This document shows positions 28,701 to 37,700 of a DNA stretch of 64,000 nucleotides, piece after piece; positions within the stretch are counted from its first letter, which is position 1; every line of letters starts with the position of its first letter. Source of the DNA: Saccostrea cucullata (lineage: Eukaryota). The translations under genes were made by a program, and so were the position numbers. The DNA lies in NCBI RefSeq assembly GCF_032062105.1, contig NW_026930753.1, positions 124,001 to 188,000 on the forward strand, read 5' to 3'. Under the pieces are notes generated by a model. The model saw only the letters and a program-made list of their open reading frames with translations, was not told the origin of the DNA and made no database searches.

Positions 28701-31700
28701 ACAAAACATGCTGAACTTATTCTATTAAAATAAATATTTTCAGACTTTACAAATATAAAAATAACCCTACCAAAACATACTTTACTATTACGAGCAAAGC
28801 TATATTAAAAAAAATGTAAACTTACAGTTGGTACACCTAGCTAGAAATAATTCAGCTTCAACAATGTTACTGTTCAACACACAGCCTTCATAACGCGAAA
28901 CATTTCGTGCAAAATCATAAACTATGAAGTCACGTGAACACAGGAAGTGATGTTGAAATTATCAAAATATTAAACAATACATTTAAATAAAAACTAATGT
29001 GTATTTTCCATGATTATATGAAAAATGACAATGACAAAAATTATTTTAATTGAAAGTCTTAAATACTTTAGCTGAACAGAATTTCTGTTACTAGAAATAG
29101 ATGTGGAAATTACCCTCAATGACAAACAGTGTATGAAAACAAAGAGAGATAACTCTATTGTGAAAATCACCACATCACATAAATATGAAACTTTAACGAA
29201 AAAAATAATGCATATTAATGTCAAACCTTATAAATAACTACACTGTTTATTAGAGTGTGACCAATTCATAGAAAAAGAAAAAAATTGTGTCTATTGCATT
29301 TTTTAAGATTTTTAAAAAAAAAATTCTTTGTGTTTGTGTTCTTTCCATTTATACTAATTAAAAACTCGGAAAAAAGTTACACCGTATGCGGCGTTTGACG
29401 CTAGAAGGGCGTGCAAAAGCAGACAGGATGGTGTCTGCAGGGGATTCCTTTAGAAAAATCTTTAAAAAATAAAAACAATAAAAAGCTTATGAATTCCACT
29501 CATGAAAAATTGTTCCAAATAGATTAATAAACATAAAAATTAGGGATGTCAAATCGGTCAATATTTGATAAACGGTTACTGTGGTGTCATTTGTTTTGAT
29601 TTTATCTGATTTTTACGAGTATCATAGGTACGAGTTAATGTGAAGGGGTTTTTTGGAACTCTTTTGTCTTTCATGCACGCTTTTCGTTTGGCGCCGACCT
29701 GTATGTTTATACCTTCTCTTCTTTTGGTTCCCCACGGTGTAAGTATCTACATCTTTTTATATAACTATGTTTTATATGATACTGTTGTATATGCAGTTCA
29801 ATTCAATCCATTATTACCAAATATTTACATGTCATTTACTTTGTGATGAGTCGTGCTGAATTTATGCATACAACATGTGACTTGTCAACGTGTGAACTTG
29901 ATCCTGATTAACTCATTATGGCAATTAATTGTACTATCGCTGAAGTAATTACACTTGAATGTTATATAAATTAATATCTTAGATTTACTTGATTACGAAT
30001 TCTACAATCTGGTTTAACGTGTTCCCTCTATGTTTTCTCATAAACTTTGTGGGATGAAATCTGTTAAATATTTTGGATAGTTTCTATTATTCTTTGAGAT
30101 AGTATTTTTTTGTGTTTGGATATTTCTTTGATTGTGAATTTATGATTGTTTATTTTTTGTAGTGTTTTACCGCATTTCATCTGAAATAAAAGGGTTAGCT
30201 ATCTGCAAAAAGAACTCGTCCTTTTCTATGGCAGAAGAGTAAAACAACCTAAATGGAGCCATCCAACGAAGCAGTCAAGGTCAAGAGGGAACCTAGTTCA
30301 CACGGTTCGCATCACAGTTCGAATCATAGTTCACATCGCAGTAGATCATCGTCTTCAAGTACTTCAAAACGCGCCAAGGCTGAAGCAGCACGGGCTCTGC
30401 TCAAGTTAGCAGAAGAGGAGGCAGCCCTCCGAAAGAGGTTATCCCAGCTTGAAGAACAAGATGAAATAGACCAGGCTACTGTAAAAGCCTCCGCGGCAAG
30501 AAGAAGAGCAGATTATCGAGCTGATATGGACCTACTCGCCGCCAAGAAAACAGCAGCAGCACTTGACGCAGAAGCTAAAGTCTTGGAGAAAGACTCATCC
30601 CTTACCGACGTAAGTGAATATGATATTCCAAGCGTAAAGGAGGATCCACAAACATGGACCACTGAATACGTTTCCAATTTGTGCAGGCACTTACAAACAA
30701 ATGGTGACAAGTCTTACACTGATACAGATATACCACCGAATACGAACCTACCCCATCGGATAGAATCACCAGCCTCATCGTATGTAGGGTTACCACGCAC
30801 TGTGCACACATTCCAAAGTCCTAACCATGTGCAGAATGCACAACTAGTGCCTGACATTTCTAAATTTCTGTTGAGGAAAGAACTTTTGATATCAAGACTT
30901 TATCGGTTTAGTGATAAACCAGAATCTTATTTTGTCTGGAAGTCGAGTTTTCAGAATGTTCTAGCAGACTTACAAGTTACAGACTTTGAACACCTGGGTC
31001 TTCTTGTCAAGTGGCTCGGACCTGAATCAAGCTCCTATGCATTAAGCATCAGAGCCGCTAATGCTGACAACCCAGCGAGGGCCTTACGCCTTCTGTGGGA
31101 GAGACTAGATGAAAGGTACGGTTCCCCCGAAAGAATCGAGAGTGTTCTAAAAGACAAACTTTCCAAGTTTTCGAAGATCAGCCTTAAAGAGAGCCTCAAA
31201 CTTTACGAGCTATCTGACCTTCTTACAGAAATTTCGAGTCTAAAGGAGCAACCGATGTATCAACCACTACTGGCTTATTTCGATTCTTCTGTTGGAGTCA
31301 ACCCCATTATCGAGAAACTTCCCCACCACATGAAGGAAAAGTGGGTCACGAGAGCATCTAAGTACAAGGAAACAAACGGACAGTGTTTTCCACCATTCAA
31401 GTTCTTCGTTAGTTTCGTGAAGGAGATGAGTCGTGTGAAAAACGGCCGAGTTTCTTATTCGGCGAAAATGTACCTCAATTAATAAAGCCTACTCGTCCAC
31501 CGGCCTTCCTCCTAAAGACTCGATTTCCTGTTACAACAACAAAAACTGACATTTTACCTGATTCGAAGGAGAAGATTACAACGTGTCAAATCCATGGAAA
31601 GAATCATCGACTTAGTGAATGCCGTGCATTCCAAAACAAATCCTTAGAGGCTAGAAAGAACTTCCTGAAAGAAAAAGGATTATGTTTTAAGTGTTGTGAC

Positions 31701-34700
31701 TTTGCGCACAAAAGCAGACATTGCAAGGAAAAAGTAAAATGCACCATTTGTGTCAGTGACAAACACGCCACGGTTATGCATGGTGACATTCCCCCTAAGG
31801 CTCATGGCGGGGAGAGCACAGTACGGTCAGGAACAAACACCAACACACATAGAACTTCACTTGAAACGCTGACAGTAGAGTCCTCTTGCACCGAGATCTT
31901 TGGGAAAATCACACTTGGAAAGTCGTGTGCCAAAATATTACCTGTGTTTGTACATCCCAGAGAACATCCTGAAAACCGCATTAAAATGTATGCCATACTC
32001 GATGATCAGAGTAACCGATCACTTGCCAGGAGTTCATTTTTTGACTTGTATGAAATCCATTCACAATCGGAAGAGTACATAATGAACTCTTGCAATGGAA
32101 GAACTTTGACATCTGGAAGACCTGCATCTGGATTTGCACTAGAATCATGTGATCATCAAGTGCACATAGACTTACCTGCTCTCGTTGAATGTGACAACAT
32201 TCCTGACAATAGACACGAAATTCCGTCACGGGAAGTCACTAGGTATCATCGTCACCTGTGTGACATTGACCTTGACAGTTTGGACCATAATTGTCAAATC
32301 CTGTTGCTTCTTGGAAGAGACGTACCTTATGTGCACCGCATTCTTGACCAGAGGACTGGTCACCCTGATTCTCCTATTGGACTTATATCTCCACTAGGGT
32401 GGACTATCGTCGGTGATGTGTGTCTAGGATCTCAACATGGCCCAGTCAATGTGTACAAAACATACGTGTTGTCCAATGGACGACCTTCCCTTCTACATCC
32501 TTGCGAGAACAAGGTAAAAATCAAGGAGCTGCCTACGCCAAGTATACCCTGTAGACAATTTTTAGACTACTCAGGTCACAATGTTTTCGCAGTAACACCT
32601 CATGACAATAAGCAAGGATTATCCACGGAGGATAGGACCTTTCTACAGGAGATTGAAAAGGAGTTCAAGAAAAATAGTGAAGGGAATTGGGAAGCCCCAC
32701 TTCCATTTAAGGATCAAAGGCCATTGTTACCAAACAATCGAGTCATGGCCTTGGAGAGGGCCAGGAGATTTGACACTAGTTTGAGAAGAGATCTCGTCAA
32801 ACAGAAACATTTTTTCGAGTTTATGCAGAAACTATTTGATAGCAAGCATGTTGAGATTGCACCACCAGTCAAACAGAATGAAGAAGTGTGGTATTTACCC
32901 GTTTTTGGCGTATACAATCCCCACAAGCCCGACCAGATCCGTGGAGTGTTTGACTCCTCAGCTACATTTCACAGACTTTCCTTGAACAATGTCTTGATGT
33001 CTGGTCCAGATCTTAACAACAGTTTGCTTGGAGTGCTTATCAGATTCCGCCAGGAACCAATAGCCATAACAGCCGACATCCAACAAATGTTCCACTGTTT
33101 TTATGTAAGACCAGATCACAGGAACTATCTTAGATTTTTCTGGCACCATGAAAATGACGTTAACCAAGAGCTTAAGGAGTATAGAATGAGAGTCCATGTA
33201 TTTGGAAACAAACCCTCACCCTCGGTAGCTATATATGGTCTACACAGAACAGCTTTAGATGCTAGAGACTCATTTAGACCAGATGTCACCGACTTTGTTC
33301 TAAACCACTTCTACGTAGATGACGGATTAATCTCCCTACCTTCTGTAGACCAGGCTGTCGATTTAATGAAACGAACACAGCTTTCCCTAGCTACTCACGG
33401 TAATTTACGTTTGCATAAGATTGCCTCAAACAGCAAAGATGTTGTCCGAGAATTCTGTCCAGATGACCTTTCCAAGGAACTAAAGAGCTTGGAACTCACT
33501 GATGATAACTTACCAGTACAAAGGAGCCTAGGACTGTACTGGAACATGAACTCTGACACGTTTACTTTCCAGATTTCTTGCGAGGAGAAACCCTTAACTC
33601 GACGCGGGGTACTCTCCGTCATAAATAGCATTTATGATCCCTTAGGATTTGCATCACCTGTGATAATCGAAGGGAAACTACTGCTACGTCAGTTATCTAG
33701 TGGAGGCACTGAATGGGATGTGCCACTCGCCGACCTGGAAGGACAGAAATGGCAGTTGTGGAAGGAGTCTTTGTCCGGACTTCAAGATGTATCTATTCCC
33801 CGTCAGTATGTTCCATGTTCTCTGCAAGGAAATGTACGAAATGAACTCCATATATTCTGTGACGCGTCTGAGAAAGCGATTGCAGCAGTTGCATATTTGC
33901 AAGTGATTTGTGAGGAAGAAAGACACTATGTGGGTTTCGTTATAGGAAAGACCAAAGTTGCGCCTACTCATGGACATACGATACCAAGACTAGAATTGTG
34001 GTCCGCCTTACTTGCGGTCGAGATCTATCAACTAGCCAAAGAAAACCTGAACATTGAGTTAAAGAGTGTGAAATTTTAATCAGATAATAGAGTAGTTTTA
34101 GGATATATCACTTATCAGACAAGAAGGTTTCTTACTTATGTCTCCAACCGAGTTGAACAAATTCTGAGACACTCGAGGAATTACTCGAGGAATTACATTC
34201 CTACGGAACTCAACCCCGCTGACATTGGAACACGGGGCTTAACGGCCGACAAGCTTCAGAGCAGTCTTTGGATTCGAGGACCTACTGAATTCCTTAAGAG
34301 ACAGTCTATTGAGCCAGATAATGCTTCTAACCCGAATACTTACCAGCCTGAGGTAAATGCCTACTTGTCTGATGTCACGTCAGCGCTTAATTCTGAGTCA
34401 GAGCCGAGAAACATTGCATGTAGATTTCAGCGATTTTCTGTGTGGTCTAGACTTGTACATGCATTTGGAAGGCTGAAGACAAGAGCACGACAACAGAAAA
34501 TGAAGAGAACTGAGGATTCATTGGTCACGTTCAAGGAATCAGAAAACTTCATCATCAGTCTCGTACAGCATGGGGTTTATGGAGAGGAGATACACTGTAT
34601 CAGAACAAACAAACCCCTACCGACGGGCAGTCCACTTCAAGCATTAGGACCAATTTTAGATGAAGAAGGCATCCTATGTGTAGTAGGTAGACTCAACAAA

Positions 34701-37700
34701 CTGAGGTTAGATGACTATGAAAAGAATCCAGCCATAATTCCAGGGTCTCATCACATTGCTACGTTACTAGTGCGCCATCACCATCAACTACTCAAGCACC
34801 AAGGACGTCACCTTACAGAGGGAGCAGTCAGATCTGCCGGACTCTGGATCAGAGGAGGAAAAAGGTTTGTGTCTTCCGTTATTCACCACTGCATCAGCTG
34901 CAAGAAACTGAGAGGAAAGCATGGAATACAAAAGATGGCCGACCTTCCAGCTGACAGGTTGGAACAAGTACCTCCATTTACAAATGTAGGAGTTGACATT
35001 TTTGGTCGTTGGCAGATCATCACCAGAAAGACACGAGGAGGAAGCGCATCATCAAAGCGATGGGGAGTCTTATTTGCATGCTTGGTGACAAGAGCAGTTC
35101 ACATTGACATAGTAGAATCCCTAAGTTCATCTGCATTCATCAATGCCTTGCGTAGATTTACCAGTATTAGGGGCAAAGTGAAGATATTCCGGTCAGATAG
35201 GGGCACCGATTTTATTGGAGCAATGGATGACCTGAGAATAGACACCATTTATGTGTAAGATGATAACCTAAAGACGTTTCTCTATGATTCAGGAACAAAG
35301 TGGATTTTCAACCCCCCACACTCATCACACTTCGGAGGGGCTTGGGAAAGAATGATTGGTCTCGTGCGCAACATTCTAAACACCATGCTTATGGAACCAA
35401 GCAACCAAAATATAACACATGACATTCTGTGCACCTTGATGGCTGAAGTAATAGCGATAATAAATTCCAGACCGTTGACACCAGTGTCTTCAGACCCCAA
35501 TACTCCATTTATTTTGACACCAAACATTTTGTTGACACAGAAACATTCTTCTGATTCTGGTTCCTTGGAGTTCGGTGACATCGGCATAAAGGACATATTA
35601 AAGTCTGAGTGGAAACGAGTGTAGGGCCTTGCGAACCAGTTCTTGAAGAGATGGAAGTCAGACTATCTTCACCTACTTCAACCACGCAGAAAGTGGAAGA
35701 ACGAAGAGCCAAATATCAAGGAAGGTGATATCGTGCTACTTAAAGAAGACAGTCCCGGGAATCACTGGCCAATGGCAGTTGTCCAGAAAACGTTCCAGAG
35801 TGACGATTCCTTAGTCAGAAAGATTCAAATCAAATTGCTTAGAGATGACAAATCAGTTATTCTTATCAGACCAATTTGTCAGGTTATTCCATTATTAACA
35901 GTGTGAAATTAATTTCAAGTATGTAACAGTACATAATGTACATTTTTTTTTATGTTTGAATGTATGGTTCTCGGCAGTTACACTTTTTCATTCATGTAGA
36001 CCATTTGTAGACGTCATTATTCAGTAGTTGTGATATCTTATAGATATCAGGCGGGGAGTGTGGTGTCATTTGTTTTGATTTTATCTGTTTTTTACGCGTA
36101 TCATAGGTACGAGTTAATGTGAAGGGGTTTTGTGGAACTCTTTTGTCGTTCATGCACGCTTTTCATTTGGCACCGACCTGTATGTTTATACCCTTCTCTT
36201 CTTTTGGTTCCCCACGGTGTAAGTATCTACATCTTTTTATATAACTATGTTTTATATGATACTGTTGTATATGCAGTTCAATTCAATCCATTATTATTAA
36301 ATATTTACATGTCATTTACTTTGTGATGAGTCGTGCTGAATTTATGCATACAACATGTGACTTGTCAACGTGTGAACTTGATCCTGATTAACTCATTATG
36401 GCAATTAATTGTACTATCGCTAAAGTAATTACACTTGAATGTTATATAAATTAATGTCTTAGATTTACTTGATTACGAATTCTATGGTTTAACGTTAGTG
36501 TCATAACTGTCTTTAGTTCGGAGGAGTGTGTTCCCTCTATGTTTTCTCATAAACTTTGTGGGATGAAATCTGTTAAATATTTTGGATAATTTCCATTATT
36601 CTTTGAGATAGTATGTTTTTGTGATTGGATATTTCTTTGATTGTGAATTTATGATTGTTTATTTTTTTTTGTAGTGTTTTACCGCATTTCATCTGAAATA
36701 AAAGGGTTAGCTATCTGCAAAAAGAACTCGTCCTTTTCTATGGCAGAATAGTTACTCGGACGTTTTTCCGATCGAGTACCCGGGTACTCGGTAAAATTTC
36801 AAATACATGTACAGGTCTGTTAATTTTCTTAAACTCAGTTAAGCTGCGTTAAACCCTAATGTTATTTTTTGTTACATTTTTAGTGCATGTTTAAAACACA
36901 TCGAGTGCAACCAAAATGATTTACTGTACCTAATTTATTTATTTTAAAAAATACACACACACAAAAGACATCAATTTGATACAGCAATAATTACAAATGA
37001 TTTACATTTTTTTGTTTGCGAAGACGGTTTAATCAATCTGCTATACATCTTTGCAGTGATGACCACGCTAGCGAACCAGAGGGAACAGATGTTGTTGGGA
37101 TCGCTTGTCGTATATTATTGTTGCGATGCAGATGCGATGCGATAATGTGCATTTTACAGGTGTAGGCGATGACACTCTAATTATCGTGTGCACATTTCAG
37201 TTAATTTTTGATAGTTTTTTTGATATATATATATGTACTTTGAAATAAGAAAAAAGCCGAGTAACCGAGTACCAGTTAAGTATTCGATACTCGGACGTTC
37301 GATCGAGTACCCGGTTAACCGGGTACTCATTGACATCCCTAATAAAAATGTTGATTATAGATAACCAAGGCATTAAGTTAGCAGCATAAAATCAGTTGAA
37401 AATTGTTCCACAAAACTGGGTCAACCCGAAGTGGCGTGGATTTGGTATGGACACTAAGGTATCAGATGATTTCTAGGAGATATGAGAGTCAATGTTAACA
37501 AACAGCCATATCATATACACTAGAACCGATCCGACAAATGTTCAATTCACAAATAAAAATTAACAAGTGGTGCGTTAGCAATTTTGTCTAGTGTACATGT
37601 TATATTTCAACCTGCTCAAACCTTTTGTTCCAAATACTTGAATTTATCTATTTTTCAGAATAAATGTGCTCAATATTGGCCAGCTATCTACGATAAAATT

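Follow-up and report, generated by a model that had tools for sequence, protein, structure and literature searches.

The bivalve Saccostrea cucullata carries a BEL/Pao LTR retrotransposon at positions 29580-36750 of the window analyzed here, a stretch of 64,000 nucleotides from contig NW_026930753.1 (positions 124,001 to 188,000). All features of the element described below are on the forward strand. The 5' LTR (659 nt, TGTGG...GAAGA) occupies 29580-30238 and the 3' LTR (692 nt, about 93% identical to the 5' LTR) occupies 36059-36750, and genome copies of the family start and end at the boundaries of the 5' LTR. The element is flanked by a 5-bp target-site duplication, GTTAC, at 29575-29579 and 36751-36755. 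RNA-library reads that end at 29580 continue with the sequence found after the 3' LTR, joining 29579 to the sequence after 36755, and thus represent an empty-site form of the repeat into which the element inserted. A polypurine tract, AGGCGGGGAG, lies at 36049-36058, directly upstream of the 3' LTR, and the same tract precedes the 3' LTRs of other copies. The gag reading frame (30253-31482, 409 amino acids) is cut short in this copy compared with the single long frame of some relatives and gave a weak match to DUF1759 (PF03564; 24 bits, just under the 25.4-bit cutoff), whereas homologues carry PF03564. A pol fragment at 31776-34079 carries the Pao peptidase (Peptidase_A17, PF05380; E value of 1.4e-42), which places the element in BEL/Pao. 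A further open frame of the broken pol region, at 34365-35258, has no Pfam match. In L053, a related public contig, the peptidase is followed by a weak Integrase_H2C2 match and DUF5641.

The 5' LTR is not followed by a tRNA-type primer site beginning with TGG. Instead, GTAAAACAACC occupies 30239-30249, flush with the LTR end, and the gag ATG is at 30253. The LTR contains the signals of a putative 424-nt GT-AG intron (29739-30162), with a GTAAGT donor preceded by CACGGT and, at the other end, a T-rich pyrimidine tract and a TAG acceptor. The last 3 nt of putative exon 1, GGT (29736-29738), are complementary to ACC at 30247-30249, and the first 8 nt of putative exon 2, TGTTTTAC (30163-30170), are complementary to 30239-30246. 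The 11 nt after the LTR are therefore the reverse complement of a sequence that would exist only after removal of the intron. The same signals are present in the 3' LTR, where the donor GT is at 36219 and the acceptor AG ends at 36674. An AATAAA poly(A) signal at 30185-30190, inside exon 2, implies a short effective R and a U5 of about 30 nt, and a signal lies in the same place in most families. Within this family, the donor is invariant in 13 LTR copies and the acceptor in 15. The 11 nt are the same in six of the seven 5' copies (seven loci, of which two are near-duplicates of one degraded copy), and the seventh has a one-base deletion, whereas the 12th base after the LTR varies between T, C, and G. 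These results confirm the anatomy on which the original prediction of splicing-dependent self-priming was based.

Split complementarity in other families

The original prediction named covariation across families as its test, and our comparison was strongly positive. Of the 20 families scored, 19 show the same split complementarity, with 11 to 14 nt in total. Fourteen of these come from this genome, and the others are two unnamed public contigs (L049 and L053), Patella, Ruditapes, and Xenopus; the one exception is from this genome. A skate and a cichlid, found later, fit as well. In these 19 families, the first 6 to 9 nt after the LTR are the exact complement of the first nucleotides after a pyrimidine-tract YAG acceptor 42 to 154 nt upstream, and the next 3 to 8 nt are the complement of the exon end before a strong donor, mostly GTAAGT or GTATGT, 89 to 541 nt further up. 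One family (L048) has the 8-nt acceptor-side match but no canonical GT donor that fits. When LTRs and sites were deliberately mismatched as a control, 8 of 348 pairs (2.3%) reached the same score, with 3 nt on the donor side.

At least 18 distinct junction/site pairs match perfectly, so at least 17 coordinated changes have occurred. Compensatory changes are found on both the exon 1 side and the exon 2 side. For example, sister families L032 and L033 differ at one base on each side, and the site differs to match. The split point itself also moves, from 3+8 nt in the family of the window to 6+7, 6+8, and, in Xenopus, 8+6 nt. The original prediction cautioned that splicing adds only 3 nt to the match, but this caveat is removed by families in which it adds 4 to 8 nt. 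Exon ends are T, C, or A rather than the usual G at position -1, yet they are paired with near-perfect intron-side donors, which fits an exon end constrained by something other than splicing. The GGT of exon 1 is preceded by a CCAC motif that recurs in other families, and complementarity usually begins right after a CAC/TAC motif at a pyrimidine/purine step, which is no more than a hint regarding the 5' end of the transcript.

It could be argued that a host tRNA, tRNA fragment, or other small RNA is the primer and that the match to the LTR junction is a coincidence, as most LTR elements use tRNAs and the first six bases of the site (GTAAAA) are shared by most families. However, the site never starts with TGG; it starts with GTAAAA or, in some families, with GTAAAG, GTAAGA, GTGAAA, or ATAAAG. 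Moreover, bases 7 to 14 differ between families and always follow the family's own LTR, which a shared host tRNA cannot explain. Although the host tRNA set was not scanned, we consider this possibility very unlikely.

The position of the LTR end was checked independently. In four families, 3' LTR or solo copies place it within a few bases of the first paired base (exactly in two), and in two more a break in Logan contigs 30 nt before the same boundary fits the same place. The LTR boundary is set by the 3' end of the minus-strand primer. It is possible that splicing is real and that the junction pairs with the sequence after the LTR, but that the helix is a regulatory or structural switch that marks spliced RNA for translation or packaging, hides the 5' poly(A) site, or controls access to the gag start, with priming relying on some other, unidentified primer. 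The helix lies 11 to 90 nt from the gag ATG and encloses the AATAAA, retroviruses probably use long-range leader pairings for such switches, and we have no evidence of priming. On the other hand, the pairing begins at or within a few bases of the first base after the LTR in every family where the LTR end was checked independently, and there is no alternative primer site, as there is no TGG-type site and gag starts as little as 11 nt after the LTR. A switch without a role in priming therefore seems unlikely, although it is the strongest of the alternatives.

Predicted folding and RNA evidence

The minimum-energy folds predicted for spliced leaders, which were joined computationally, contain the helix in 18 of 19 families, compared to 5 of 19 for unspliced leaders. 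The duplex energy is -9 to -18 kcal/mol for the full junction and -1.7 to -7 kcal/mol for exon 2 alone. We also searched for spliced RNA by aligning three raw oligo-dT RNA runs and one metatranscriptome to 29450-30650 at 88% identity. No read or contig joins 29738 to 30163, and there were no clustered starts or ends, but only 0 to 4 reads lay on the LTR, so this result neither supports nor refutes splicing. Contigs from the RNA library cross both the donor and the acceptor unspliced, and the public contig L049 is also unspliced, but its run type is unknown and it gives no information on splicing.

No intron-less LTR was found in this genome for the four families that were tested with short junction motifs (19 to 21 nt). 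Three one-mismatch hits for one of these families were absent from its exon-by-exon match lists, and we consider them to be due to chance. All 12 LTRs of a second family keep the intron. That no spliced RNA was seen and no intron-less LTR was found would also be compatible with a model in which no splicing occurs, the two segments pair with the site side by side while the 90 to 540 nt between them loop out as a folded domain, and the splice-like signals are incidental. However, a GTAAGT-class donor sits exactly at one edge of the match and a pyrimidine tract plus YAG sits exactly at the other edge in 19 families from molluscs to vertebrates. This is not expected for a looped-out domain, and unspliced folds rarely form even the 8-bp part. 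We therefore regard this model as very unlikely.

A possible splicing-dependent self-primer

The comparative evidence supports a functional pairing between the spliced junction and the primer site, although it does not show that splicing occurs or that this RNA is the primer. The explanation that we favor, with a probability of about 0.6, is that this element belongs to a BEL/Pao clade that does not use a tRNA primer and primes its own minus-strand DNA synthesis with a piece of its own leader RNA. Transcription would start in the first 160 nt or so of the LTR, at or upstream of the GGT at 29736; a start downstream of the donor would not be compatible with this model. The spliceosome would then remove 29739-30162 and join GGT to TGTTTTAC, and the resulting 11-nt junction would fold back onto the 11 nt that follow the LTR. 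The RNase H of the element would cut after the C at 30170, which would become the 3' end of the primer. Reverse transcriptase would extend this end through U5 and the short R (about 68 nt), transfer to the 3' end of the RNA, and copy a 3' LTR that still holds its intron. The same intron sits in both LTRs, so the 3' copy would have to escape splicing in template RNA, which is unexplained. We consider it about as likely as not that the RNA starts at the first complementary base. Exon 1 would then be only 3 to 8 nt, for which there is to our knowledge no precedent, and the primer would be the very 5' end of the spliced RNA, exactly as in Tf1.

Alternatively, self-priming may occur in trans, with a fully unspliced genomic RNA as the template and a primer donated by a separate, spliced transcript of the same family that is co-packaged or annealed. 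This would remove the need for position-dependent splicing and would explain why every LTR keeps its intron. The predicted fold favors the helix in cis, and in Tf1 the primer appears to act in cis, but our data do not distinguish between cis and trans. We consider the trans version unlikely but not excluded.

Tf1 and Tf2 of Schizosaccharomyces pombe and the Tf1/sushi group of Ty3/gypsy elements provide a precedent for a leader-derived primer. There is no tRNA site in these elements, the bases right after the LTR pair with about 11 nt of the element's own leader RNA, and the element's enzyme is thought to cut the leader to free a 3' end (PMC5341516). Whether a transcript carries a working primer can be regulated, in Tf2 by the choice of start site. 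The element described here is not a member of this clade, as its Pao peptidase places it in BEL/Pao. Moreover, the primer of Tf1 is contiguous in the DNA, whereas in the families compared here it is split into 3 to 8 and 6 to 9 nt by a GT-AG intron and would exist only in spliced RNA. With tRNA-primed BEL/Pao and other LTR retrotransposons, including those with copia-type priming by an internal tRNA fragment, the element shares the overall plan of LTR, primer site flush with U5, gag-pol, and polypurine tract before the 3' LTR, but its site covaries with its own LTR rather than matching a conserved host RNA. Ogre elements of legumes and retroviruses with a major splice donor, some lying in R, also appear to keep spliceosomal signals and to need some RNA unspliced for replication. 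In those cases, splicing seems to make subgenomic mRNAs or to join reading frames and is not proposed to create the primer, and here the intron lies wholly inside the LTR and so occurs twice in the genomic transcript.

We found no prior description of such a mechanism in the papers that we searched, and the BEL/Pao survey and the Sinbad paper that we checked never mention primer sites. The known solutions for priming are tRNA 3' ends, tRNA fragments, a contiguous self-primer, proteins, and nicked target DNA. A primer that exists only after splicing would be a new solution and the first direct mechanistic link between the spliceosome and the start of reverse transcription. It would also explain why this BEL/Pao clade has no recognizable tRNA site. 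The rule that the LTR end is followed by the complement of the exon 1 end plus the exon 2 start could help to annotate these elements and their transcription units.

A TATA box lies 30 nt before the GGT in the family of the window, but it is not conserved in the other families and does not fix the RNA start. Some loci were not informative. The gag start could not be placed for loci L027, L031, L034, L037, L043, and L045. Loci L014 and L015 look like two copies of one degraded element with a replaced 5' LTR part and no fitting donor. The Ostrea edulis and Mytilus loci are degraded as well, each with a base lost or changed in the site.

The BEL/Pao element and its split complementarity

The region studied is the 5' end of a BEL/Pao LTR retrotransposon that spans 29580-36750 on the + strand. 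Its two LTRs, at 29580-30238 and 36059-36750, are about 93% identical and differ by a 29-nt indel and a few others, and they are flanked by the 5-bp duplication GTTAC. Reads from RNA libraries that end at 29580 continue with the sequence that follows the 3' LTR, indicating that the element sits inside another, abundant repeat and that its left boundary is exact. This host repeat (29450-29579 and 36756-36800) is abundant in RNA libraries, with a depth of up to about 175 in contigs; many reads show the uninterrupted form, and several different upstream continuations occur at 29534-29541. The pol region carries the Pao peptidase (PF05380, E 1.4e-42), and gag gives a near-threshold DUF1759 match. 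The coding region of this copy is broken into three frames, whereas some relatives keep one long frame. A polypurine tract, AGGCGGGGAG, precedes the 3' LTR.

The original prediction held that the bases following the 5' LTR are complementary to a sequence formed by splicing of the LTR itself, and every coordinate it gave is right. The LTR ends at 30238 and is followed by GTAAAACAACC, with the gag ATG at 30253. CACGGT|GTAAGT has its GT at 29739, and a T-rich tract and TAG end at 30162, followed by TGTTTTAC. Both signals are also present in the 3' LTR. Joining GGT to TGTTTTAC gives the exact reverse complement of the 11 nt after the LTR. Within this family the donor is invariant in 13 LTR copies and the acceptor in 15. 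The 11 nt are the same in six of seven 5' copies (seven loci, two of which are near-duplicates of one degraded copy), and the seventh has a one-base deletion, while the 12th base after the LTR varies T/C/G. Because nothing varies, this family alone cannot show covariation.

Covariation across families and species

A search of the genome with the gag protein found more than 100 BEL/Pao gag matches, at roughly 35-56% identity to the window's gag outside its own family. In the loci where the gag start could be placed, the LTR ends in ACA or ATA and the following bases read GTAAAA plus variable bases. The reverse complement of the first 7-9 bases is always found 53-128 nt upstream, directly after a pyrimidine tract and CAG or TAG, and it changes in step with the site (CA with TG, AG with CT, GA with TC, AA with TT). 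This also holds for sites that start GTGAAATA, GTAAGAA, or ATAAAGG. The next 3-6 bases of the site are the complement of the exon end in front of a strong donor 157-529 nt further upstream. Examples are GGT/ACC, AGC/GCT, AGA/TCT, GGA/TCC, TAGC/GCTA, TAGT/ACTA, ACACT/AGTGT, AACAAT/ATTGTT, CTCGTT/AACGAG, and AATAGA/TCTATT. The sister families L032 and L033 differ by one base on each side of the junction, and the site differs at both matching positions. When only donors chosen by their intron side were counted, 19 of 20 families reached at least 3 nt on the donor side, whereas 8 of 348 pairs did so when each LTR was paired with another family's site. The exception, L048 (a family on genome contig C11541), has the 8-nt acceptor-side match but only a noncanonical candidate donor. 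About 40 nt before gag it carries two tandem primer-site-like motifs (GTGAAATATCTC... and GTGAAAGATCTC...), of which only the first matches the acceptor-side 8 nt, and the only fitting exon end (CCAC then AGGAGA) lies 806 nt upstream and is followed by GC rather than GT. In addition, the loci L014 and L015 (genome contigs C966 and C10836) share more than 1.4 kb upstream of a related LTR, the first part of which is replaced, and no donor fits. They look like a duplicated, degraded copy.

Homologues of gag led us to contigs elsewhere. The same architecture appears in a Logan contig (3+8 nt) and a JGI contig (5+8), in the limpet Patella vulgata (3+8), in the clam Ruditapes philippinarum (4+7), in Xenopus tropicalis (an intron of about 90 nt and an 8+6 split giving 14 nt), in the skate Leucoraja erinacea (5+6), and in a cichlid copy that has lost the first base of the site (6+5). 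The split point moves between lineages while the total stays at 11-14 nt, which is hard to explain unless the two segments act as one strand. The JGI contig L053 (7057 nt) reads pol, one LTR, and then gag, and it could be a tandem pair sharing an LTR, a one-LTR circle, or an assembly collapse. Among the gag proteins, P0005 and P0042 are filed in public records under a bacterial symbiont bin (Candidatus Thiodiazotropha) and as a dihydrodipicolinate synthase of a carp. These are probably host contamination and a naming error.

Position of the paired site and a possible spliced self-primer

The base after the LTR is by definition where the 3' end of the minus-strand primer sits. We determined LTR ends independently of the complementarity. 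For the window family this was based on the target duplication and the 3' LTR. In three other families, 3' LTR and solo copies stop matching at about the predicted base (predicted 92, observed 90-93; predicted 103, own 3' LTR 103; predicted 102, observed 102 and 102). In two further families, Logan contigs begin exactly 30 nt before the predicted boundary, which fits an assembly-graph branch point if, as we assume, these contigs were built with 31-letter words. In the families where it could be checked, the LTR end falls at or within a few bases of the first paired base, exactly in two. In exon 2 of all families, the paired segment nearly always ends in TTTAC and is most often followed by C. 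As the last base of the LTR is A, pairing stops at the LTR edge, and this may be a cleavage-site determinant.

Leaders were built from the loci and folded. The minimum-energy fold of the spliced leader contains the junction/site helix in 18 of 19 families with 60 nt of exon 1 and in 19 of 19 with exon 1 cut to its paired bases, whereas unspliced leaders form the exon-2 part in 5 of 19. Predicted duplex energies are -9 to -18 kcal/mol for the full junction, against -1.7 to -7.1 kcal/mol for exon 2 alone.

At the RNA level, four runs gave no joints, but only 0-4 reads lay on this LTR. Contigs from an RNA library cross the donor (29580-29842) and the acceptor (30077-30236) unspliced, although these could be DNA or the 3' LTR part of transcripts. 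At the DNA level, no intron-less LTR was found for the four families searched. Three one-mismatch matches to the joined exon motif of the L038 family (genome contigs C6548:15380, C9653:143865, and C21464:586619; control 0) are not in that family's LTR match lists. In a second family, all 12 LTRs with both parts matched keep an intron of 368-393 nt. Template RNAs must therefore keep the 3' copy of the intron, although with about 25 LTRs examined this only bounds 3' splicing of templates to a minority. How the 5' copy would be spliced while the 3' copy is spared is not known, and a spliced RNA that primes an unspliced genome in trans would avoid this problem. Taken together, the strong comparative evidence supports the original prediction that splicing assembles the primer, but no step at the RNA or cDNA level has been shown. 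We estimate a probability of about 0.62 for spliced-junction self-priming in cis, and most of the remainder goes to a trans version or to a nonpriming role for the same helix.

The closest known mechanism is the self-priming of Tf1/Tf2, in which a leader segment pairs with the site after the LTR and is probably cut off by the element's own enzyme (PMC5341516). In Tf2, the choice of start site decides whether the transcript carries the primer, and here splicing would play that role. The element is not a member of the Tf1/sushi clade. In the literature that we could search, which did not extend to subscription journals, so that an earlier note cannot be excluded, we found no description of primer sites of this BEL/Pao clade, of self-priming in BEL/Pao, or of a primer formed across an exon junction. 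The main BEL/Pao survey and the Sinbad paper never mention primer sites or tRNAs.

Candidate transcription start sites

In two families the LTR start lies about 160 nt before the donor, so the promoter would be short. Complementarity usually begins right after a CCAC, CTAC, or GCAC motif, at a C|A or C|G step, which looks like an initiator. In self-priming, the plus strand regenerates the site by copying the primer to its 5' end, and the sharp, family-specific limit of complementarity (3-8 nt) is therefore what one would expect if the RNA starts there. That would make exon 1 a 3-8-nt micro-exon, which is unprecedented to our knowledge. The data do not decide between this and a start at a conserved GCCGCCAT-like motif 42-75 nt upstream of the donor, which would give an ordinary first exon. 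In the LTRs of many families this GCCGCCAT / GCCATTTTG-like motif, which resembles a YY1 site and lies at about 29688-29700 here, recurs together with one or more ACGAGTTAAT / GAGTTATC motifs. These motifs are found in otherwise unalignable LTRs, including that of the Xenopus element, and they may be core promoter parts.
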